This document shows, piece after piece, positions 3,001-64,000 of a stretch of DNA of 64,000 nucleotides. Source of the DNA: Trichoplax adhaerens (Eukaryota > Animalia > Placozoa); contig NW_002060960.1 in assembly GCF_000150275.1 (NCBI RefSeq), positions 1,114,562 through 1,178,561 on the forward strand. Direction: 5' to 3'. Positions within the stretch are counted from its first letter, which is position 1; every line of letters starts with the position of its first letter. Under the pieces are notes generated by a model that saw nothing but the letters and a program-made list of their open reading frames with translations, made no database searches and was not told the DNA's origin. A program made the position numbers and the translations under genes.

Positions 3001-5791
3001 TTTCAATAAAAATCTAAAAGTTTTCAATGATACAGTACTTTACGCAAAAATATTTTTAAATATTTAAGAAGTGGGTACAGTGTTTGCAAGTTTATTGCCA
3101 TTGCAAATTGGCCAATAGAGTATCCCGCAATTGTTTTAACTTTCCCGACTATTATAAATAGCAACTGCTTTAATAAATTTGATGATATTGAGCATTATAA
3201 TTAGATAGTTAATATTACTGGATAAAAAGTATCCATGTTATTGTTTAAAGTATGGTATATTAGTCTAGGACGTAAAAATTTTATTTTTCAACTTTCAACT
3301 TCAATAGCTGCATATAACTACTATAGTTCCAGTTTATTAAAATTAGGCTATTAAATTTAATAGTTTAAGGTGCAATCAGAGACGATAACAACTAAAAATT
3401 AAATTTGCAAAATGGATAAAGAAGGGAAATGAACCTACATTCTTTTAATTCCTTTAGAAATTGCAGATATTTATGATTCTGTTAACGTGAAGCAACGGGT
3501 TTTACCGTCTTTACATCGACAAGAATTAGGGCTTGAGCTTACAGCAATTTGCTAATTTGCAATACATTAACCGCAAAAAGAAGAAGCCAACAGGCTGATA
3601 AAAAAGTTATCTTTAGTATTTTTAACGCTAAACCGATCTTTCGCAAAATAATTGCTTGAAAGGGATAGGAAGGTTAGTGAAATTAAGTATAATATATGAT
3701 ATATTTATAGTTTTGTGTTCTGAATTATTTTTTAGCGTATCGGAGAAACACATATTTAATGAATAAATTAATAGTAAGAACGTAATTAAAATGGGAAATA
3801 CTTCTGATTGGTTGGCAGATTATACAATTTTATTTTTATGTCACATGTCACACAGGGCACGATTTTAGGCACTCTGATGAGTAGAACTTCCTTTATAATT
3901 ACGTAAACATAATTAACTGCTAATATTATTTTTCTAGTCAATATACAGTGGTATTTTGGTGAAATTATAGTACACTATGAAGAGTTAATGAAAGTAAAAT
4001 ACTGCCTCCGTATATCAACTTTTGGCCGTTTCTGTTTCATAGGAGATGATAATATCATGGGTCTGTACTTAATATCTGAATGACTCACACTTATTACTGT
4101 CTGTGCTATTAGTCAGAGTGTGCATTTAATATTAATATTCAATTACTGTACTCAGCTTAAAGAGAGAAGTATACTGTGCATTCATATAGCGAATCTTTCG
4201 AGGCTTAGTACTGTAGAATAGCAATTTTCTATTGCCGTAACAATTGCCATGAAGCTACCAGTCTATTACAATATACTTATGCTGAAGTTAGTACCTTATT
4301 GAAAGTGATTCAAACTTTTTGATATGATATTTTCATAAAGTTACAGCACATATTTTCAATCATCGCACTGTACTGTATTTATACGGCATTGCTATGCTTT
4401 AAGTATAAATCAGTCAAATTAATAGATTGAAGATTTTACTGCTATAACGAAGCTTATACTAATATACCGAACTACTGCAGAGTTTAGTGAATGTATTTGT
4501 AACATTACTTTATGAGAATAAAAGAACAAACATTGAAATAAGTTTGTTTGATGGGAATACAGTACTTTATATCTAAAGAAATGGCCCTTTTACAGCATTT
4601 TTGTAAGGTTTACTATCAGGCACTAGATGTAGCCGATCCGTTTTTGGTACAAGTTTTACTTTGCTCTGTAGCAAATGTTTTCGTCAGGTTAATATTTTGT
4701 AACGGACATTACCCGAAACGTAATTCTATTGATGTATGTTATCATGGCAATTCCATACGAAGAATGTGTTGTAAAGAGAGAATTATTTGTGGACGCTAAA
4801 TTAATTTTTAAATATTTATAAAAGGGAAGTGCTGTATTGCTGTAGTATATATCATAAATGTAATGATTTTAGCTAATTAAAGTGGTTATGCGTTAGGGTT
4901 ACGAAAATACAAAGACAGTATAGATTTTATTCTTCTGCATAGTGAATTTCTGTTTCTAAGTACGCAATATTGCGCTTTATGTGAAATATTTTCTATTCCT
5001 TTATTTATGCTAGTAATTAAAGCATTTTAATAGTAGGTTATTTAAAATTAATTGTAATTCACTACCTGAACTCATCGCCTGCTGCGTATCTATTTACTCA
5101 TATATTCTCCAGTGCCTTATAAAACTGCAATTTTGAGCCGTTCGTTCCTCGGATATTAAGATTTATTAACTAGAAATATAGATACTTTGCGATACAGTTA
5201 CGTATATAAGATTTAAATAAAGAACTAGTTTACTGCATTTATCTATTGCTTTGGTATCAACTATATCCTTGTTTTCAATGTTAGTAGCAGAGTTGCAATC
5301 GTGACTACCTTACATTGAGTAATAATATCACAATCTTTAAATATGGATCGTAAGGTCACTTTATTTAACCACAAAAATTGGTAGCAGTGCATAATTAACA
5401 ATGTTTCAAAAGCATTTTTTAATATTAAACGTTACGTTCTTTAACTTGAAAGTAGCTTTAAAACCTCTTCATTACTTTATTTTTATTATATATATAATAA
5501 AAATAAGAGTATTAATTGTCACATCTTTTAACTGTTGATAGCGATAAATATAAGAGTAGAGTATTCTTGAGTTAGAATTGCTACTTTTGAAAGGGTGCAT
5601 CACGTCTAGAAAGAATCTTTTATAGGCTTATAGTCAGTGGATTTATGGCAAATCCTTTCCATCCTTTAATTGCTCAAAGTAATGCTTCGTAATAAAATGC
5701 AATAAAGTATACTTAAAGAATTGCATTATACTGTAGTTCTGTTAATATTAAGTTATTCATTTAGAACTAGTGAAGCCATTGATTAAGTAAT

Positions 5792-36348: not shown

Positions 36349-39300
36349 CTACGTGTTACTTAGTTTCCTTTTGGTTCCCTTTTCATTTTCCCTTTCCGCA
36401 TTTTCTAAGATTTCTATCACTGGCGAATTAATGGTAGATAGAACCTCACAAAATGCATCAAATGCTCGATTACCACGTTCCGGTAAAATATCCAACAATT
36501 TCTCCATTTTCCTGTGATAATAATTGTCACAGTTTATATTATCTACATGATAGATTTTTACAACTAAGCTATATCATCGTATCGTATTGCGGACTTACTC
36601 ATAATCGGTATGCTGACATACAATGATTTCCTTTAGATAAAGTGTTAGAATTTCTCGACTGTATAAGTGATTACAAATAGGCTTCACACTTGATTTACAT
36701 TCCTCAATAATTTTGACGTAGTGGCTGCGTAAGATTTGTTTATGTATTTCCAACATTCCAACTCCGCTGATCTTATATTTTGGTATAGTTGACGCTGAAG
36801 TAAATAATCAAAAAATATTTAAGTTAATTATTTGTCGCTTGTTGAAATAGTATAAGATATTCATATTTTCCTTATAGGAGCTACGATTATAATTTTCAAA
36901 GAATAACTCAAGTTAGTCCATAGACATATTGGCAACTTTGCCTAACTAACCACGATCTTCCTCAGTTAACGGCATGGGAGTGTCCTGTCCGTTATCGCTA
37001 GAAGCATCGACTGTTAAATCCAAGAGATAAAGAATTATTATTAAACCAATTTATAAGGTTATAGATTTCATTTAATAAATTAATGAGTTCGATCCGCCGT
37101 ACAATAAAGTACATACTTTTTAAAAAATTTTACTGAATATTTTGTCTATTGTCATTACAGTTATTTTAGTTAGTAAATTTATGACAACATCGTTTCAAAT
37201 GTATGAGCGCTATTATTGATAACTTATCGATTGAATTAGAAATTAAAGTTGAAATATTATTAAAGCAATTTGTTACTGTTTAATAGATCAATAAAATTGG
37301 TTATTCATGAGAGTTCCAATTAAGCCTACTGTATATACTGATACATTTCATAAAGGAATAATCAGCTACAAAAGATTCGAAAGACAGCACCGTATTTGTG
37401 GTATCACCTGCAATATTATCTAACCAAAACTTTAATTGGTTCGAGGAAAACCAAACATATTGACATTTAGGGCAATCCAGAAGTGATTTATCATCACTTA
37501 AGTCATCTTCGATATTTACTAACTCTCCACAACGCGGACACTTAACACTCACTTTTATTCGTATGTGACTCATATTTGGCATCCATTTAGTAAGAACGAT
37601 TCTTAAAGCTGATTCAATTACATCCTTAACATTGAGCTCAACGGCTGTTTTAGCTTGTAAACTTCGGTGTCGATAAACTAATTGTAAGCCTATGACCGTT
37701 GATAACTTATCGATAATCAAATTAATACCAGGACTAATTCGAAATGAAGCGCAGTTTTGATATAGTTGAACTCTGCTATTATTCCATCCACGCTTCTGCA
37801 AACATTGAGAAATCAAGCAGTAAAAGATATTATAAGAAATATAGGGTAACTCCTTCTCATCAAACCCTAAATAGATGTATTTCGATGTGGTGCTATTCGA
37901 TGGATATAATGCATTACTCTTAGGTCGTGTCTTTAGCAGACAAGGAATAAGATAGATACGATCTTTTCCTTGTAATTCACTTGCTTCACAAAGAATATCG
38001 TAGTGAGTCATAAGAGACAATACGTATTTTCTTTCTTCATCGTCTAAATTAAATTTGCTCCAAACGTGTCGAATGTATTCTTCGCTTATTTTGCCTGTAT
38101 TCTGAATCTTCTCGTAGTCACACCAGTCATCAGCATGAGAAGACTTGAAAAATGAAATTCGAATTAATGAACAAAACACCTCAATTAGCCAATCAATATC
38201 CGATACGACCCAATTACTCAGAATCTCGTCTTTATCGCAATAGACGATTTGTCCGATACTATGCAAGTAAGATAATAAACTATCTAACTTCTCGCCTTGC
38301 TTAGATAGATGATGTTTGTCTATCAAGTCTTTAACTTGTGTTTTAGTCAGTAACTTCTTTATTGTTTTATCTTCTCTTTCTCCACGAAGTATTTGAATGA
38401 TTTCATACCATCGAACTGGAATAGGATTCGTTATAAATGGTAATTTTTCTGCAATTGTTGTAAAGATTTGACATAACTGTTTACGTGTCTCGTCTCTTAG
38501 ACGTTGAGTTGCTTCGCTGTTATCGTTGCCATCACCATTCATAGCTAAGTGTGATAAGTATAGATGTTTGGAAAAGGCCTTATGGCCAAATTCACGTGAT
38601 ATCTTGTTATAAGCTGCTTGTATTTTTCTATTTTTTTCTTTTTCATTATTAGCTACAATCTTATCTGCATGACTACCGATGACAATGACAATAGGCAATT
38701 CATAATTTTTACCATCGATCGTAATCTCATTTCTAACATTACCCTCTAAACCATCGCTTAACCTCTTGCATCCATGTACAGATGATAACCATTCATGCAT
38801 TCTTGCATAGTAGGTTATATCTGATTTTGAGTTGTTCCTTTGTTGTATAGCGTCATTAATCTCTTCAGCGATATTAAATACAAGAACATAAATACTATCA
38901 CACGACATAAATGGTTGATGTGTAACGTGATATTCTGCCTGATCTCCGAAGTCGCACAATACAGCATGTAGATTGTCTATTTTTGACTGCTGTGATTTAT
39001 TACATTCATTACTATCTGTATTTGCCTTTTGTATCTCAGAAAGTTTCGGTATAAGTTTGTTATACTTGCTGCGAAGTGATTCATCGAATACATTCGTTCT
39101 TTGCGATTTCATATTGGATAAGGTCTGTCTTGTAACTTGTAAAGATGGCGATTGAAAAACTGCTAACCCAACTTTACTATCAGCGAGAGTGCCCAATCCA
39201 GTCTTCACCATATCACCAGTATCGAATGTAATCAATTCTATTAGCGGATAATTACCACTAGCTACTTGTGTTGGTGCTTCATTAGCCAATAGTGACTGCT

Positions 39301-42300
39301 TAATTAGCACTTTGAGTAAAGTTGTTTTACCTACATTTTCTGGTCCGATAATCATAATTCTTATAAGATTGTTCTTACATTTTCCTTCTTGTAATGCGCA
39401 AATGAAATCGCGAAAATAATTCAGTCCAACTGTGTTACGAAACGAGAGTTAATATGGAGGATGAAATTCACAAAATTTGTTTTCAAATTAAAAAATTATA
39501 CAGTATGTACTGATTTTCATTTCAACTATATCTTGCATATTGTGCAATCTTTAACAAATTATGATAAATTATCATACAGGAGCTGATAAATACTGTTTTG
39601 TCAAATATTTTCGCAATAGCATTTATTCAACAACTTATTACACTTTATTATAGTATATTTAAAGTTAACCAGACATGACTACATTAATTAAACTGATTTC
39701 TCTATAATTCTAACAACAATATCCTAAATTAATGCTATAAACACAAAAGATAGAATATACTATGATTAAAAACTGTATATCTTTTTTGCTATATGATGAA
39801 ATCTAAACGAGTTTTCACACAATATTATATACATCTTTACTATTTTCGATCGTCAAATCTTTTATTATACATGCTATACTATGAGTATTTAACTAAATGT
39901 AAATGTGATAATATACAGTAAGAAAAAAATACAGTACGTACAATAGTCTATTTAATAATGTCATTGTATATTTAATATACCAATACAACGATACTTACCT
40001 CCTGCAATATTCGTATGATGTGTATGATTGATATGGAATTATGCGATGATAGAATAATAGAGTTTATATAGTATTGACGTATAGTAAGACACAAGTAGAG
40101 AAGAGTAGAGTAGTAATGGTAATTTGTATTGAATGACGATTGAATGGCGATTTAGTGTATAAGCATTGCAGTGTATTGGTGGTTTTAGTATACGTATATC
40201 CGTATAATAACCATACGATAATCATTCCATTCGATCATTGCATATATGTACATATCCATTCCATAGTAAATCGCATTGTCGATCCCATAGTAAATCCAAT
40301 AACATTAAACATGCTATACTACAACTTATTATAATTATCGTACAAGTATTATTCTAATCATACACAATAACAAATATACAGTACGTACAATAGTCTATTT
40401 AATAATGTCATTGTATATTTGATATACAATTATATTAATACTTACAATCTGTACAATTGATATAGAATTATACGATGATAGAATAATAGAATTTATATAG
40501 TATTGACGTATAGTAAGAGTGAGATAGAAGAGTAGAGTAGTAATGATAATTTGTATTGCATGGCGATTTAGTGTATAAGCATTGCAGTGTATTGGTGGTT
40601 TTAGTATACGTATATCCGTATAATAACAATACGATAATCATCGCAGTCGATCATTGCATATATGTACATATCCGTTCCATAGTAAATCGCATTGCCGATC
40701 CCATAAAATAATCCAAGTTAATACACTAAAATAATATTAATCCTCATACAGCAAACATGCTATGCTACAACTTACTATAATTATCGTAGAAGTATTATTG
40801 GGATCATACATACTGACAAATATATAGCCCGTACAATAGTCTATTTAATAATATCATTGTGTATTTTATACACCAATACAACGATACTTACAATCTGTAT
40901 GATTAAAAAAAAATAATGTGATTATAAAAAAATAAAGTTTATACAACATTGACGTATAGTAAAAGAGAAGTAGAGAAGAGTAGAGTAGTAATGGTAATTT
41001 GTATTGAATGACGATTGCATGGCGATTAAGTGTATAAGCATTGCAGTGTATTGTTAGTTTTAGTATATGTATATCCGTACAGTAACAATGAAAAATCATT
41101 GCATTCCATCATAGCATACATGTACATTTCCATTCCACAGTAAATCGTATTGTCGATTTCATAGTAAATCCAACAGTAAACCATATATGTTTGTTAATAA
41201 AACAAAATAAAACAATCCAAGTTAATATACTAAAATAATATTAATCCTTCTACATTAAACATACTATACTACAATTTATTATAACTATCGTACAAGTAAT
41301 ATTGTAATCATACACAATAACAAATATACAGTACGTACAATAGTCTATTTATTGATATCATTGTGTATTTAATATACGAATACAACGATACCTACCCCCT
41401 GCAATATTCGTATGATGTGTATGATTGATATGGAAATATTCGATAATAGAATAATAGAGTTTATACATTATTGACGTACAGTAAGATAAAAGTAGAGTAA
41501 TAAAGGTACATTGTAATCAATGGCGATTTAGTGCATTAGTAGTTTAAGTATACGTATATCCGTATATTAACCATACGATATTATTGAATTCGATCATTAC
41601 ATATATGTACATATCCGTTCCATAGTAAATCCAGTAGTAAACCATATATGTATATTAAAACAATAACATAAAATAATCACAATTAATACACTAAAATAAT
41701 ATTAATCCTCCTACATTAAACATGCTATACTACAACTTATTATAATTATCGTACAAGTATTATTCTAATCATACACAATAACAAATATACAGTAAGTACA
41801 ATAGCCTACGTAATAATATAATTGCATATTTAATATGCGAATTAACAATACTTACGCCCTGTAATATTCGTATGATGTGTATGATTGATATGGAATTATG
41901 CGACGATAGAATAATAGAGTTTATATAGTATTGACGTATAATAAGACAAAAGTAGAGAAGAGTAGAGTAGTAATGGTAATTTGTATTGAATGACGATTGA
42001 ATGGCGATTTAGTGTATAAGCATTGAGGTGTATTGGTAGTTTTAGTATACGTATATTCATATAATAACCATACGATAATCATTCCATTCGATCATTGTAT
42101 ATATGTACATACCCGTTCCATAGTAAATCGCATTGTCGATCCCATAGTAAATCCAATAATAAACCATATATGTATATTAATATAATAACGTAAGAAAATT
42201 CATATTAATACGCAAAAGTAATATTAATCCTCCAACATTAAACATGCTATACTTCAATTATAATTACCGTACAAATAATATTGTAATCATAAACAATAAT

Positions 42301-44614
42301 ACATAAACAGTATGTAAAACAGTCTATTTGATAATAATAAATATACAGTACGTACAATAGCCTATTAAATACTGTCATTCTATATTTAATATACCAATAT
42401 AGCGATACTTACGCCCTGTAATATTCGTACAATGTGTAAGATTGATATGGAATTATGCGATGATAGAATAAAAGAGTTTATATAGTATTGACGTATAGTA
42501 AGACACAAGTAGAGAAGAGTAGAGTAGTAATGGTTGATTGTAGTAAATGACGATTGAACGGCGTTTTAGTGTATTGGTGATTTTAGTATACGTATATTCG
42601 TAAAATAACCATACGATAATCATTCCATTCGATCATTGCATATATGTACATATCCATTCCATAGTAAATCGAATTGTCGATCCCATAGTAAATCCAGTAG
42701 TAAACCATAGATGTATAATAACATAAAATAATCATAATTAAAAATAAAATAATATTAATCCTCCTACATTAAACATGCTATACTATAATTATAAGTATCG
42801 TACAAGTATTATTGTAATCATACACAATAAAAAATATACAGTACGTACAATAGTCTATTTAATAATGTCATTGTATATTTAATATACCAATATAACGATA
42901 CTTACGATCTGTTGATTAATATGGAATTATGCGACGATAGAATAATACAGTTTATATAGTATTGACGTATAGTAAGAAAGAAGTGGAAAAGAGAACAGTA
43001 GTAATGGTAAATTGTATTGAATGACGATTGAATGGCGATTTAGTGTATAAGCATTGCAGTGTATTGGTGGTTTAGTATACGCATATCCGTATAATAACCA
43101 TACGATAATCATTCCATTCGATCATTGCATATATGTACATATCCATTACATAGTTAGTCACATTGTCGATCCCATAGTAAATCCAGTAGTAAACCATATA
43201 TGTATGTAAATACAATAACATAAAATAATCATAATTTATACACTAAAATAATATTAATCTTCTAATATTAAACATGCTGTACTACAACTTATTATGATTA
43301 TCGTACAAGTATAATTGTAATCATACACAATAACAAATGTACAGTACGTACAATAGTCTATTTAATAATGTCATAGTATATTTAATATGCGAATAAAATA
43401 ATACTTACAATCTGTATTAATCATACGGAATAATGCAATGATAGAATAATACAGTTTATATAGTATTGACGTATAGTATGACACAAGTAGAGAAGAGTAG
43501 GGTAGTAATGGTTATTTATATTGAATAACGATGGAATGGCGATTTAGTGTATAAGCATTGCAGTGTATTGGTGGTTTTAGTATACGTATATCCGTATAAT
43601 AACCATACGATAATCATTCCATTTGATCATTGCATATATGTACATATCCATTCCATAGTAAATCGCATTGTCGATCCCATAGTAAATCCAATAGTAAACC
43701 ATATATGTATAAAAATACGATAACATAAATAATTCATGTTAATGCGCAAAAGTAATATTAATCCTCGTACATTAAACATACTATACTGCAATTATAATTA
43801 TCATACAAGTATTATTCTAATCATACACAATAACAAATATACAGTACGTACAATAGTCTATTTAATAATGTCATTGTATATTTATTATACCAATACAACG
43901 ATACTTACAGTCTGTAATATTCGTATGATGTGTATGATTGATATGGAATTATGCGATGATAGAATAATACAGTTTATATAGTATTGACGTATAGTAAGAC
44001 ACAAGTAGAGAAGAGTAGAGTAGTAATGGTAATTTGTATTGAATGACGATTGAATGGCGATTTAGTGTATAAGCATTGCAGTGTATTGGTAGTTTTAGTA
44101 TACGTATATCCGTATAATAACCATACGATAATCATTCCATTCGATCATTGCATATATGTACATATCCATTCCATAGGAAATAGGATTGTCGTTCCAATAG
44201 AAAATCATATATATATCAATCAAATCATATAGATTATTTTATTAAACAGAGTAAATGTAATAATGAACGAAAGTAATAATTATTTTACAATTTGCTGTTT
44301 GTAACTGTACCCGGATCATTGGCCGCATCATGTAAAATCCAACCGAATTTTTGTACTTTAAGATCTGGTTGCAAACATAATAAATTGCAAAAGGAAGTCA
44401 TGTTCGTTTTATCTTTTTTCTTGGACTTTAACAAACTGCACAGTGTTCTGTTTTTTTGTTGTCGAGATGACTTTGAATTGATTAATTTGTACTCCTCCTC
44501 TGATATTAAATTCTCATTCTTGATATCAGTTAACAACTCTTCTATAGGTAAATGATCGCAGAGATGATTTTCATAAATTCGTAAAGCGTTGTCAATATAA
44601 TTCCATCCTTCCAT
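36349..44614 (-). CDS. ROCO-family protein: CARD-like death fold, linker, ROC GTPase, COR with terminal CxxC..CxxC, C-terminal CARD
   Basis: Exon 44614 to ~44289/44311 is CARD-like (LPIEELLTDIKNENLISEEEY...KNRTLCSLL). The large exon ~39429-37408 has GPENVGKT, CDFGDQAEYHVTHQPFM, GSHAD and COR motifs (IPVRW, LSYLHSIGQIVY, YLIPCLL). Three further exons (~37010-36950, 36795-36598, 36511-36349) encode a CARD ending KLLDILPERGNRAFDAFCEVL, stop at 36349-36351. Confidence 0.9.
39920..44230 (-). repeat. Intronic tandem array of nine ~450-560 bp units, each with a candidate 3-nt microexon
   Basis: Recurrent unit sequence (ATACAGTACGTACAATAGTCTATTTAATAATG...). Each unit has minus-strand CAG-NNN-GTA(A/G)GTAT with NNN at 43909-11 ACT, 43409-11 ATT, 42906-08 ATC, 42413-15 GGC, 41856-58 GGC, 41396-98 GGG, 40892-94 ATT, 40446-48 ATT, 39999-40001 GAG. 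Confidence 0.9.
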
Positions 44615-45945: not shown

Positions 45946-46689
45946 TCATTAAAGACACCGTGTAATGTAACTCACTGACGTTATTAACTGTAACTATATA
46001 TGAGTATCATATTCATAACATAATCATTATTGACGTAAAAAGACAATCGCTACACGCAGATATTTACATCTACAGTAAAAATATTCCATGACCATGTAAA
46101 ATTAGTTAATCGAATCAGCTACACAATAGTTACTTAATTCTGATTGTGGGTACCGAACTAATTAGGCATTGTTCGAAAATAGTTTTAAAGTATACCGTAC
46201 AAACATGACATCGTCAAAGTTTTATTATATTTCTTTCTCTCTCCGTTTATATGAACGGGGAATTCTCACTAGTAGGATGAATGGAAGAAATAGGCATCAT
46301 CATTTTTAAAACTACAGGTATGGTTTGTTACTAGATGTCATCATGCAATTTCATATTACTGTATTATAAACACAAGTGAGTCAAGGACTATCAGTCAATA
46401 ATAACCTGTAGCGCAGCAAGGATATTTTGCACGCAGCTTGAAGACAACACGCGTCAATTCGGTACGAGTGAAAATTGGGACAATCACCTGCATAGCCGTT
46501 ACTAAATATGGATTAGACAGTAAATCTAATTTGGACAATCTGTTGATGGAGTATGTGAAGGAAATGCTCTATTCTGTACACTCATTGCTCATTCACTCAA
46601 TTGATGGAGGCTAACTACCTGTAAGAGTATCATTGAGTTGAGCGATCTGTGAATGGTGTATTGATCTGATCAATGATGGGCTTATCAGA

Positions 46690-49600
46690 CTGATTGGAGT
46701 TGATGGCCAGTGGATATCGGTGGTGATGTCACTGGTTGAAGTAGCGGATAGTCGATCAACGATGGGATGGATTCCTCTACTGGCTATTGGCTAAGCAGGA
46801 GAAAGGCTGAAAAGGAAAGGGGAAAAAACTGCAGCAAGGCCCGTCAAGATAGCGCAATCAACTGAGAGCAATGTTGGCTACGTTCTCCAAACTAACTATA
46901 CGGCACGTTTCTGCAGCTGGTTGGCATGGGCATAGTAGACAGTATAGTGTACCGCGTCAGACATGCAATCCACTCGAAATGACTCAAGAATCAGCCTGCA
47001 CATCATTAGTATTACAGATGATCGTCTCTACCAGTCTACCTAATGCGATTACAGTCGTGAAGAAGGACGGACATCTTGTTTAATGACTACAGTACTAGAA
47101 TTGATTGACCAGGCCCTTCTCCAGTTCTCCTACTTGTTGCAATCATGTCCTTCGAGTAATTATTATTCCATTTGAAAATAGGAAAATGGAATAATAATAA
47201 ATTAATATAACGTTCTCTTCTATTGCATTGGAAGCGCGACACAGTGACAGGATTACATTGATTTGGAGACGACGGTGTGCAATAGAGACCCTTAACAACC
47301 CTTACAGACTAACGGTCTCTAGTGTACTGTACAATGTTGCGTATTGGCAGTGGTTACCATATTCAGTTAGTCACTGCCGTAATAGCAGGGCGAGCTTTCT
47401 TCAACGTTTTACTTCAACTATCTTTTAAACTACTGTAAGTACCAGCATACAGTTTAGAAGGCAAGAAATGGGCCTAGTTACTTTGTTGATAGCCTGCCTG
47501 CCTGTTATCCAATACTCCGCTACGATATATGATATTTTGTTGAAGATTGCAATGATGCAGGAAAGATGCAAATTATGCTATAGAATGCAGCAACTTATTT
47601 CACCCGTTTTTTTACCCTTCAAAAATGAAAAAAAGAGTCGTTTCCTTCTAGCATAGAACCACTGATTACTTCATCATTACCTTGTTCTTACTCTCCAAAC
47701 GTGATATAAACAGTAAAATTTTTATAATGTATAACTCATTGAGGTAATTAATAATGGAGTAGGGTAAAACCTAGTCAATGCAATAGCACTCTTTCACTAT
47801 TTTGAATCCAACCTTGCAAGAGTCAATATATAATACAACAATTGGTTTTCATAGGTACATGATCCGTTATGATGATCATCTCCACTTACCAGGTTAATTG
47901 GAGTTGATGGCAAGTGGATATCGGTGCTGATGTTCCTAGTTGAAATAGAGAATACGATAACGGTGCTTGGAGCGTACACAATCCTCTAATCGTAGCGGAT
48001 CGTTGATGAAAGATGAGATTGAGAAAAGGGATGAAGAAAACTCCAGCAAGGCCCGCCAACTGAGAAGAATGTTGCCAATGTTCTTCTGTACAGATGCTAT
48101 CAGTAGTCTACAGTAGGTCATCCAAAGTGGTGTACAATACACTATGCTACACTCCACGCTAATAACGCTTGCAGTGGTTGGTGTTTTGGCGCCCAGCGAC
48201 TACTGGCGAGTAGCGAGTCGGTAAATCACTTTCAGTACTAAGTAAGGGTTAGACGATCCATTTTGCCGCTGATTCGACTCTATCAATGCAAGCGTATATC
48301 ATACTGCTCGAAAGCAACTTAGCAATGCGAAGAGGCGGTCCGTTTCTACGGATCGGAAGGAATATCTCAATTTTATTGGTTACTTCTTTCCATTGTGTGA
48401 ATGGAAAGAAGTAACCAATAAAATTGAGTGAAAGGAAAGAAGTAACCAATGAAATTGAGATATTTCTTCCGATCCGTAGATGATCCATGCGCACCGCCTC
48501 TTCGCATAACGCCCTTCACTTAGCAGCACGTTCTCTTCCATTATTACATAGGAACTTTTGGAAGCGTGACACAGTGACAAGATTGCATTGCCTTGGAGAC
48601 GATGGTGTGCAATATTGCGCATTAGCAGTGGTTACCATGGTCACTGCTTTAGTAGCAGGGTGGGTTTTCTTCAATGTTTTACTTCAAGTAAAATTGAACG
48701 ACGTAAAGTACTCGTTTTCGCCTACTATAGATACCAACAGACAGTGTAGAAGGTAACAAATGGATCTAGTTACTTTGTTGATAGACTGCCGGTTATAATT
48801 GTTATCCAATATTCCGATACGAGTATCTGAACGATGTTGACTGCAAAGTTTGCAGAGAGAGTAGTTGCTTCTTAGTCTTAATCCGTTCATTCGATTGGAG
48901 AGTCAACGGATGTATCCTCTGCCATTTTCTTTCTCAGTCATCCATTTACAGATGGTCTTGCGTTGATCGCAGGCATGATTACCAATCAACAAAGTCAACT
49001 ATTGCCCTATTTTGGACTCAAACTTACGCATACATTTCATATCAGCGTATAGGCATGATAGAGCGCTGATCTCATTTATCCACATCGATAACCTGACGAC
49101 TTGTAATGTGAACCGCATTTTTGCACTTTACCATTCTCAAATCCAATAAAGGATAGCATTGCAACATTCCGTAATCATGCTTTGTTGTATTTAATTGTCA
49201 GCAATCGCATACTCTTGGTTTCCTTGCTAGATTAATTATAAATTACATGATACTTGAACTGAAACCAACGTATCCAAAACAAAATGCTATTTTGTTCAAG
49301 ATTGTAATGATGTAGTAATCGAGATGGAAATTGTGCTATGGAATGCAGAAACTTACTTCACATGTTTTGTTTTAACGTACGCGTCTTACTTTATTTATTT
49401 GTTTAACGTACGCAGGTAAGAAATTAAAATAGAGGAGTCGTTTTCTCCTACAATAGAACCACTCACTAGCCAATGTTCCTTCTCTGAATACTGTACCATC
49501 GACAATATTCTTATCAATATTAATATCCAGTACAAAATGATATTTTCTTCAAGATCGTAATGATGTAGTCAAGATGGAAATTGTGCTATGGAATGCTATA

Positions 49601-50253: not shown

Positions 50254-50512
50254 AAAAGGCTACAAAATGCCCTATTCTCCTCTTCTAGAACACTTTTAAC
50301 TTATTACTCCATCATTACTTTGTTATTACACTTGAATTGTGATAGAAACAGTCAATTTCTCATTCTGTAGATTGGTTACCAACTCATACAGGCAATTAAT
50401 ATAGTAATCAAAGACTTGGTTGATTCAATAGCACCCTTTCAATATTTTCAATCGGTACTTTGCAAGAGTTAATAATACAATGACATCAAATTTTGCCAGC
50501 TAGCTATGTACC
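50254..50512 (+). repeat. Dispersed ~250-bp repeat, copy 2
   Basis: Aligns by eye to 34922-35175. Confidence 0.8.
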
Positions 50513-57900: not shown

Positions 57901-58067
57901 TACACTCAAGTATCAGTATACAAACAAAAAATTATTGGATCAGTCATTGAATCTCCATCAAAATATGATTTATAATTTCAAGTGCTTTATTTGATCTTTC
58001 TAACTTTAACTTTCCTAAGCAAACTGACATTGTTGTAGTTACTAGGCTAAATAACTTCTATTACAAT

Positions 58068-58525
58068 TATTAAAAGCTAAATATTTCCGTATCCATATCT
58101 AATGTCAAATGACTTGCAACATGTTGGATCTGTCATTAAAATTATTAGTAACTGTTATTAAAAACTAGAAATTTTGGTATCCATATCAAGTATCATAATA
58201 CATGCGCTTTGTTAGATATATCGTTAACGTTTTAAGTTATTAATAAACTATTATTAAAAGCTAAAAACTTCGGAATCCATATCAAGAGTCAGAAAGTATA
58301 CACCTTATTAGATCTGTCTTAGCATTATAAGTTATTAATAAACTATCAATAAAACTAAAAAAGTTGGTATCCATGCTAAGTGGCAGAAGACTTACTTCTT
58401 ATTGAATCTATCATTAGCGTTGTAAGTTGTTAATAAACTACCATTAAAAGTTACAACTTCGGTATCTACATCAAGCGTCGAAAAACTTTCAGCTTATTGG
58501 ATCTCGTGTCAATGTTGTAAAATAA
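58068..58525 (-). repeat. Five ~90-95 bp tandem units, each with a candidate 12-nt microexon
   Basis: Unit ATTAAAAGCTAAAAACTTCGG.ATCCATATCAAG...TTATTAGATCTGTC repeats with periods 88, 96, 94 and 95. Confidence 0.75.
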
Positions 58526-63124: not shown

Positions 63125-63174
63125 NNNNNNNNNNNNNNNNNNNNNNNNNNNNNNNNNNNNNNNNNNNNNNNNNN
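63125..63174. other. Assembly gap
   Basis: Run of N. Confidence 0.99.
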
Positions 63175-64000
63175 ATACAGTACGTACAATAGTCTATTTA
63201 TTGATATCATTGTGTATTTAATATACGAATACAACGATACTTACCCCCTGCAATATTCGTATGATGTGTATGATTGATATGGAAATATTCGATAATAGAA
63301 TAATAGAGTTTATACATTATTGACGTACAGTAAGATAAAAGTAGAGTAATAAAGGTACATTGTAATCAATGGCGATTTAGTGCATTAGTAGTTTAAGTAT
63401 ACGTATATCCGTATATTAACCATACGATATTATTGAATTCGATCATTACATATATGTACATATCCGTTCCATAGTAAATCCAGTAGTAAACCATATATGT
63501 ATATTAAAACAATAACATAAAATAATCATAATTAATACACTAAAATAATATTAATCCTCCTACATTAAACATGCTATACTACAACTTATTATAATTACTG
63601 TACAAGTATTATTCTAATCATACACAATAACAAATATACAGTAAGTACAATAGCCTACGTAATAATATAATTGCATATTTAATATGCGAATTAACAATAC
63701 TTACGCCCTGTAATATTCGTATGATGTGTATGATTGATATGGAATTATGCGACGATAGAATAATACAGTTTATATAGTATTGACGTATAATAAGACACAA
63801 GTAGAGAAGAGTAGAGTAGTAAAGGTAATTTGTATTGAATGACGATTGAATGGCGATTTAGTGTATAAGCATTGCATAATATTGGTAGTTTTAGTATACG
63901 TATATTCGTATAATAACCATACGATAATCATTCCATTCGATCATTGTATATATGTGCATACCCGTTCCATAGTAAATCGCATTGTCGATCCCATAGTAAA
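63175..64000 (-). repeat. Second copy of the ROCO microexon repeat array (two units visible)
   Basis: Near-identical to ~41326-42150. CAG-GGG-GTAAGT at 63245-63247 and CAG-GGC-GTAAGT at 63705-63707. Confidence 0.9.

Follow-up and report, generated by a model that had tools for sequence, protein, structure and literature searches.

Tandem candidate 3-nt exons in the CARD-to-Roc intron of a Trichoplax adhaerens ROCO gene

The sequence studied is a 64-kb window of the Trichoplax adhaerens genome (C1397:1114562-1178561; "the window" is used below for this whole stretch of DNA), which carries the ROCO gene TRIADDRAFT_60922 on its minus strand. Between the exon encoding an N-terminal CARD and the exon encoding the Roc and COR domains lies a tandem array of nine repeat units, each providing an acceptor-like AG, exactly three bases and a donor-like GT. 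The units carry what appear, from their sequence, to be signs of selection for splice-site function: AG-free zones ahead of the acceptor, a donor conserved through position +8, a YAG acceptor (Y, pyrimidine) and the constant 3-nt spacing. We regard it as moderately probable that the units are maintained as functional splice-site pairs, and that splicing brings some or all of the 3-nt segments into mRNA as exons of one-codon length.

Results

Organization of the array

A regular-expression scan of the window located nine matches to CAG-NNN-GTA[AG]GTAT on the minus strand, starting at 43914, 43414, 42911, 42418, 41861, 41401, 40897, 40451 and 40004, and zero matches to CAGNNNGTAAGT on the plus strand. 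A first-pass annotation of the same DNA had listed nine CAG-NNN-GT junctions with six triplet states; all were recovered, with the same triplets and coordinates. In array order the triplets are ACT, ATT, ATC, GGC, GGC, GGG, ATT, ATT and GAG. Unit length ranges over 443-554 nt, and pairwise identity over 84-94%. The boundaries of the two flanking exons are here refined to 44311 and 39429, and two further junctions, at 63250 and 63710, are added. The features of the locus are listed below, in transcript order, with a slash marking a splice boundary and the junction types being those defined further on.

44311..44614, minus strand: N-terminal CARD exon, 304 nt; ATG at 44614, 101 codons plus one base; donor CCGG/GTACAG, phase 1
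43912..44310, minus strand: intron 1, from the CARD donor to the AG of the first junction; AG-free for 381 nt before the acceptor
39991..44230, minus strand: tandem array of nine units, each made of GTAAGTAT, about 150 nt containing AGs, an AG-free zone of 275-370 nt, YAG and 3 nt
43909..43911, minus strand: candidate 3-nt exon 1, ACT; L-type junction
43409..43411, minus strand: candidate 3-nt exon 2, ATT; S-type junction
42906..42908, minus strand: candidate 3-nt exon 3, ATC; S-type junction
42413..42415, minus strand: candidate 3-nt exon 4, GGC; L-type junction
41856..41858, minus strand: candidate 3-nt exon 5, GGC; L-type junction
41396..41398, minus strand: candidate 3-nt exon 6, GGG; L-type junction, donor GTAGGTAT
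40892..40894, minus strand: candidate 3-nt exon 7, ATT; S-type junction
40446..40448, minus strand: candidate 3-nt exon 8, ATT; S-type junction
39999..40001, minus strand: candidate 3-nt exon 9, GAG; L-type junction, CAGGAG/GT, with a second AG abutting the donor
39430..39998, minus strand: last intron, from the unit 9 donor to the conventional Roc acceptor (ttaac...ctctcgtttcgtaacacAG); mostly unique sequence, AG-free stretch of about 79 nt
37408..39429, minus strand: Roc-COR exon, 2022 nt; acceptor acacAG/TTGGA, phase 1 (TT GGA...), exon start TTGGACTG
63175..64000, minus strand: second, partial array copy with junctions GGG (63250) and GGC (63710), just after a 50-N gap (63125-63174)

The partial copy spans 826 nt and is 98% identical to 41326-42151, its first 300 nt being 100% identical. 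Its GGG unit has the canonical donor GTAAGTAT, whereas the counterpart in the main array has GTAGGTAT. No Roc exon was found downstream of it inside the window, and the genome past position 64000 reads N. It may represent a misplaced haplotype contig or assembly duplicate, or else a very recent duplicate forming a second locus.

The main array could itself be an artefact of the 2008 Sanger assembly, that is, a collapsed or mis-joined repeat. Most of the other array copies abut scaffold gaps, and the near-identical partial copy directly follows one; but the nine units at 39991-44230 are gap-free and differ from each other by 6-16%, enough for unique assembly, and independent paralogs share the architecture. 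We consider an artefact very improbable.

A search of the units against Rfam gave a single chance-level match (E 0.3) and no known structured RNA. A hairpin placing the triplet in its loop was no better than those of shuffled sequences (z between -0.7 and -1.5).

AG-exclusion zones

The junction AGs of the window are all preceded by 275-381 nt without any AG. At the paralog junctions the AG-free zones measure 290-396 nt, with the exception of one rearranged copy. AG-free runs average 16 nt over the whole 64-kb window, and on its minus strand each of the 11 that reach at least 200 nt ends exactly at a junction AG. The zones are not merely G-poor, as about 350 nt of zone contain about 14 GA and about 22 CT dinucleotides and no AG; the first 150 nt or so of each unit contain five to eight AGs.

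Within 18 non-redundant zones, 215 distinct substitution variants were counted. If variants were placed at random, about 30 of them would be expected to create an AG, and none was seen. The test is not circular, because the zone edges fall at the same homologous AG, except for one shared TTTTAG variant at the 5' edge. In published work, AG-free zones of up to about 400 nt characterize distant branch points and are overrepresented at human exons that are alternatively spliced (Gooding et al. 2006, PMC1431707); a zone of this kind is present in all nine units. Candidate branch-point motifs (TTAAT, TACTAAA) occur in the unit consensus, and a sliding conservation analysis along the unit showed no outstanding block marking a branch point.

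These data bear on a different explanation, according to which the array is a silent intronic minisatellite: the 4.9-kb stretch would be removed whole or by nested splicing, the motifs would be passive copies of a single ancestral junction and the triplets would be absent from mRNA. Passive copying leaves the 30 or so expected but missing AG-creating substitutions unexplained.

Splice-site signatures

Splice-site signatures were examined in 20 non-redundant junctions, taken from the array and its paralogs. On the acceptor side, AG is found in 20/20; position -3 is C in 17, T in two and A in one, and never G, giving YAG in 19/20 and AAG in the remaining one. On the donor side, GT is found in 20/20, and positions +3 to +8 read AAGTAT, hence GTAAGTAT, in 19/20, variation starting at +9. 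Position +8 is the last base able to pair with the conserved 5' end of the U1 small nuclear RNA (snRNA). Of 54 other GTAAGT occurrences in the window, just 3 continue with AT. The spacer between acceptor and donor is exactly 3 nt in all 20 junctions, despite an adjoining 18-nt indel, the exact spacing beside indels having been reported at first pass for the nine units. In S-type units the splice-like motifs are intact within strongly diverged flanks. Each candidate 3-nt exon is flanked by sequences usable as 3' and 5' splice sites, as a spliceosomal microexon would be.

A silent minisatellite leaves unexplained why the donor is invariant exactly through +8, even where the flanks have strongly diverged, and why the 3-nt length stays constant beside an 18-nt indel while three adjacent columns are hypervariable (see below).

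Between paralogs, the intron sequence derived from the units is 94-100% identical, versus 82-93% for the adjoining unique intron, and intron 1 is 95-98% identical, versus 89-96% for the CARD exon. The higher identity of the unit-derived sequence could be due to constraint, to gene conversion, or to both.

Variation of the triplets

When all junctions were aligned with 150 nt on each side, the three triplet columns were the most variable of about 350, with nucleotide diversity (pi) of 0.64-0.70 against a mean of 0.12. Two junction types can be told apart. The S-type reads ...CATA[C/A]AG-ATT/ATC-GTAAGTAT (here ATT or ATC) and is found in five junctions, including that of a single-copy paralog; its triplet is stable. 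The L-type reads ...CACATCATACGAATATTGCAG-NNN, is 18 nt longer, and accounts for fifteen junctions. L-type triplets differ by 0.67 per site, about nine times the 0.072 measured over 83 flanking positions, and show 9 extra states where 1.45 are expected (P about 2e-5). They are also GC-rich (31 of 45 bases) within surroundings of 27% GC. Because the synonymous divergence of the paralogs is only 0.045-0.17, the triplets are near saturation while neutral sites are not.

Such hypervariability requires either diversifying selection acting while the length stays fixed, or a bias of mutation or recombination that is very local. The two are inseparable here, since intronic positions -3 to -5 vary too, by transitions.

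The 18 nt that precede each L-type CAG (for example 43915-43932; CACATCATACGAATATTG) look like an S junction that was copied and has decayed, CAC ATC ATACGAAT being comparable with CAG ATT GTAAGTAT. The resemblance suggests that, at L-type junctions, a micro-duplication may have retired one 3-nt exon and made a new one. A four-unit higher-order repeat (L-S-S-L) was also considered and rejected, the unit identities giving no support to it.

Flanking exons and reading frame

The CARD and ROC exons recognized at first pass were identified by Pfam: the CARD exon matches PF00619 (E 6e-8), and the exon at 37408-39429 matches PF08477 (Roc, E 1e-7) and PF16095 (COR-A, E 3e-16). The latter exon contains a Roc GTPase domain followed by COR, as in ROCO proteins, and is 99% identical to TRIADDRAFT_60922 in a protein search. 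The two exons dominate the coding sequence, to which the candidate 3-nt exons would contribute at most 27 nt.

The CARD exon ends in ...GATCCGG, with its donor GT at 44310. Both its donor and the Roc acceptor are in phase 1, and a direct join, ...CCGG/TTGGA..., is in frame, G plus TT giving Val. Because both flanking exons are in phase 1, any number of 3-nt exons keeps the frame, in keeping with the general rule, cited at first pass, that exons of 3n length can be skipped without frameshift.

Between the Roc acceptor and the annotated Met (39355) lie 25 codons (GLNYFRDFICALQEGKCKNNLIRI) that are conserved at the protein level in the paralogs and in a placozoan homologue with 57% identity. This conservation makes a coding exon further upstream necessary. 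Only the CARD exon is compatible in phase, and wherever both exons of a paralog are assembled it lies ahead of the Roc exon. TRIADDRAFT_60922 and the Trichoplax sp. H2 models begin at the internal Met 39355, omitting the CARD exon and the 25 conserved codons; public Trichoplax models of this family are truncated at the N-terminus. In the H2 annotation the CARD exon appears as a stand-alone open reading frame (ORF) of 109 aa, and one H2 model, marked as partial, stops exactly at ...ANDP, the position of the CARD donor. Other placozoans have CARD ORFs of 101 aa, equal in length to the CARD exon described here, and a search of representative proteins with this exon returned CARD-only ORFs, none continuing into Roc. 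The real protein of TRIADDRAFT_60922 is probably CARD-Roc-COR-CARD.

Upstream of the CARD exon, the final 39 residues of TRIADDRAFT_60922 have a 59%-identical counterpart on the minus strand at 50332-50448, a paralogous C-terminal exon fragment.

Translation of the triplets

The reading of the triplets was worked out by translating G, the included triplets and TT over all 512 inclusion subsets. Because the phase is 1, each codon is built across a junction and the triplets are not codons themselves, so the idea of one codon per unit, put forward at first pass, does not hold in that form. With no inclusion the linker is Val; single inclusions give DF, DL, GL or GV; units 1-8 together give DYYRRRDYF, and all nine give DYYRRRDY followed by TGA. 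The 2^9 subsets that had been anticipated, with fewer distinct peptides, amount to 512, of which 195 (38%) contain a stop; the 317 open ones encode 122 distinct peptides.

Genomic distribution

A whole-genome search with one unit, complemented by inspection of the genomic context, motif scan and tblastn, found about eight other places, all of them in the homologous intron of close paralogs and on the strand of the gene. About six recent paralogs carry the unit, in 1 to at least 9 copies, and nowhere but in the CARD-to-Roc intron, where it always lies in sense orientation; it is not a dispersed repeat. A genome-wide occurrence in random orientation outside genes had been named beforehand as the pattern at odds with an exon cassette; only paralogous CARD-Roc-COR introns were found, in sense orientation. 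Of the 96 genome-wide matches to CAGNNNGTAAGTAT, 19 belong to the repeat family, a share above chance, six further matches, C1306:3884 and C1414:7120209 among them, lying outside the sites inspected. Two CARD paralogs that are more distant (C1413 and C1414:8.2 Mb) lack both a Roc exon and any junction preceded by an exclusion zone. The expansion of Roco genes in Trichoplax, to at least 17, has already been published (PMC4104024).

The junctions of the paralogs are listed below. Copy numbers are lower bounds, as most arrays end in scaffold gaps.

C1399: at least two junctions, GCT and ACC
C1372, two arrays: at least five junctions (CAA ... AGC, GGT, AGC, GGC) and at least two junctions (GGC, TTG)
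Start of C1397: at least one junction, ACT
C1414:7.31 Mb and the near-identical contig C1278: one junction, AAG-ATT-GTAAGTAT; the intron measures 935 nt

The single-junction paralog likely has the ancestral layout.

A mobile origin was also considered, in which the units would be introner-like or other transposable elements and the 3 nt their target-site duplications. Each unit begins with GT and ends with AG, and 3-bp target duplications occur in some DNA transposon superfamilies. All genomic copies, however, occupy the corresponding intron in members of a single paralog family, in one orientation, with none at an unrelated site; the triplets flanking a unit differ from each other, and the unit ends are not inverted repeats. 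Dispersed copies, target duplications and terminal repeats were thus not found. This origin is rejected on the distribution of the copies and is largely refuted, and we give it hardly any credence.

In the C1260 paralog (C1260:4700-11171, at about 5040-5075, minus strand), homology to the unit starts exactly at ATC/GTAAGTAT, with unrelated sequence upstream, after a different ORF, so that the breakpoint falls on the 3-nt position. This paralog also has a 22-nt local duplication that repeats the ...ATC-GTAAGTA junction.

Discussion

Origin and function of the units

The ancestral gene would have had the CARD exon, an intron of about 400 nt, a 3-nt exon (ATT), an intron of about 570 nt and the Roc exon. 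A segment of about 500 bp spanning the ancestral 3-nt exon would then have been tandemly duplicated, up to nine copies here, every copy being retained as a working intron. Such an intron would start with a 5' splice site matching U1 through +8 and end with a 3' splice site, YAG, reached across a 275-381-nt AG-free zone, which would imply a distant branch point. A distant branch point may keep U2 and U2AF away from the AG, leaving the donor located only 3 nt downstream still bindable. Adding unit 9 gives TGA, so that a productive full-length mRNA would have to omit at least one unit.

Several observations weigh against the splicing of the triplets into mRNA. The junction acceptors are without an adjacent pyrimidine tract, and part of the conservation could stem not from selection but from gene conversion or copying in the recent past. 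Divergence between the paralogs is low (dS 0.045-0.17), so they are young; over about 700 codons their dN/dS is near 1, and two of them (C1414:7.31 Mb and C1260) have frameshifts in the Roc exon; the family may be undergoing rapid protein evolution or partial decay. GAG of unit 9, directly after ATT, creates an in-frame TGA, and in the C1372 paralog GGT followed by AGC creates a TAG. Because full inclusion leads to a stop both here and in C1372, stops are not avoided. Finally, no protein joining CARD to Roc-COR was found in two very large protein collections, queried with each of the two exons, Roc-COR and CARD, and with the first 120 residues encoded by the Roc exon.

The acceptors, the stops, and the young paralogs with their dN/dS near 1 fit a silent minisatellite, as do the in-frame direct join and the fact that protein searches, made exon by exon, revealed no model or protein record holding linker residues between CARD and Roc. 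In view of the three features that it leaves unexplained, namely the missing AG variants, the donor through +8 and the fixed 3-nt length around hypervariable columns, a silent array appears to us possible, but rather unlikely. The stops themselves would be compatible with three situations: the units are not all present in productive mRNA, the stop is used (for a CARD-only product or for nonsense-mediated decay), or the triplets never reach mRNA.

The first-pass annotation had interpreted the array as a combinatorial diversification cassette, with inclusion or skipping of the units and unequal crossover between alleles, to which independent choice of units and diversifying selection on the triplets may be added; as a whole, this interpretation is partly supported. 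L-type triplets are indeed hypervariable at fixed length, unit number and content differ between paralogs, long AG-exclusion zones are tied to alternative splicing in humans (PMC1431707), and 122 distinct open peptides are arithmetically possible. The variable segment, however, is a short CARD-Roc linker, which is not an evident surface for recognition, a stop is present in 38% of the subsets, and the variation at intronic positions -3 to -5 fits a local mutational or recombinational effect equally well. Combinatorial diversification thus seems improbable to us.

A more elaborate version of the splicing proposal can be imagined, in which a working system of one-codon cassettes would generate many CARD-Roc linker variants by alternative inclusion of units. 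Unit 9 would decide between the full-length Roco protein and, through its stop, a product with CARD only, L-type hypervariability would result from diversifying selection, and unequal crossover would change the number of units between paralogs and between alleles, while the AG-exclusion zones would let the spliceosome handle serial 3-nt exons. We offer this full scheme as speculation, and doubt that it is correct in all its parts.

Related systems

The closest known systems are the micro-exon genes (MEGs) of schistosomes and the distant-branch-point exons. In Schistosoma mansoni, MEGs are reported to have exons of 3-81 bp, in multiples of three, which can be dropped without frameshift and so vary the protein (bioRxiv 10.1101/2023.06.21.545858). 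They resemble the array in having tiny, frame-neutral exons separated by much longer introns, and differ from it in that many different micro-exons build most of a small secreted protein. In Trichoplax, by contrast, all candidates are 3 nt long, lie in tandem intron copies and fall, in phase 1, within the linker of a cytoplasmic-type Roco GTPase; symmetrical micro-exons do not form most of the coding sequence, nor is the product a small secreted protein. The human exons with distant branch points (PMC1431707) are single and of normal size, whereas in Trichoplax the layout recurs nine times in tandem ahead of candidate 3-nt exons.

Single 3-nt microexons occur in animals, for example in RPS24, PICALM and the bee ELAV gene, where they are reported to be processed by the ordinary spliceosome, several consecutive microexons of RPS24 changing the C-terminus. 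They are isolated and conserved in sequence, whereas the Trichoplax set is tandemly amplified and hypervariable. The ROCO genes of brown algae underwent a lineage-specific expansion, with exon shuffling and alternative splicing, and their frame-neutral repeated exons produce receptor diversity (PMC11378527). In the algae entire LRR exons of the sensor domain serve as cassettes, and those of Trichoplax would be 3-nt exons in the CARD-Roc linker.

The junctions are also reminiscent of recursive splice sites, or ratchet points, where a strong 5' splice site comes directly after a 3' splice site within a long intron, so that the intron can be removed stepwise. Recursive sites have AG abutting GT, with zero bases between them; in Trichoplax 3 nt separate the two in 20/20 junctions, and the zero-length option exists only at unit 9 (CAGGAG/GT), so that the array lacks the defining arrangement. 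Searches of the literature returned no account of 3-nt exons arranged in tandem arrays, nor any of nuclear microexons in Trichoplax.

If the triplets are spliced in, the locus would be an extreme gene design, with serial 3-nt exons arising from tandem intron duplication, and would suggest a strategy by which the spliceosome may deal with them: the branch point would be distant, the spacer long and free of AG, and the donor matched to U1 through +8. It would also provide a fast-evolving coding element, variable in copy number, within a death-fold/Roco family that has expanded in an early-branching animal. A silent array would still leave the AG-free zones and the hypervariability of three columns to be explained.

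Other features of the window

Within the units (40064-44135), open frames of 50-64 aa are found on both strands in the AG-free zones (for example MIIVWLLYGYTYTK...). The lack of AG/CT dinucleotides probably gives rise to these frames as a by-product, and it is unlikely that they are genes.

Further direct repeats occur elsewhere in the window. Three 72-nt copies, about 90 nt apart, are located at 58063-58318, and two pairs of 70-76-nt repeats are spaced by 1.2-1.3 kb (46681-46750 with 47885-47954, and 47423-47498 with 48715-48790).

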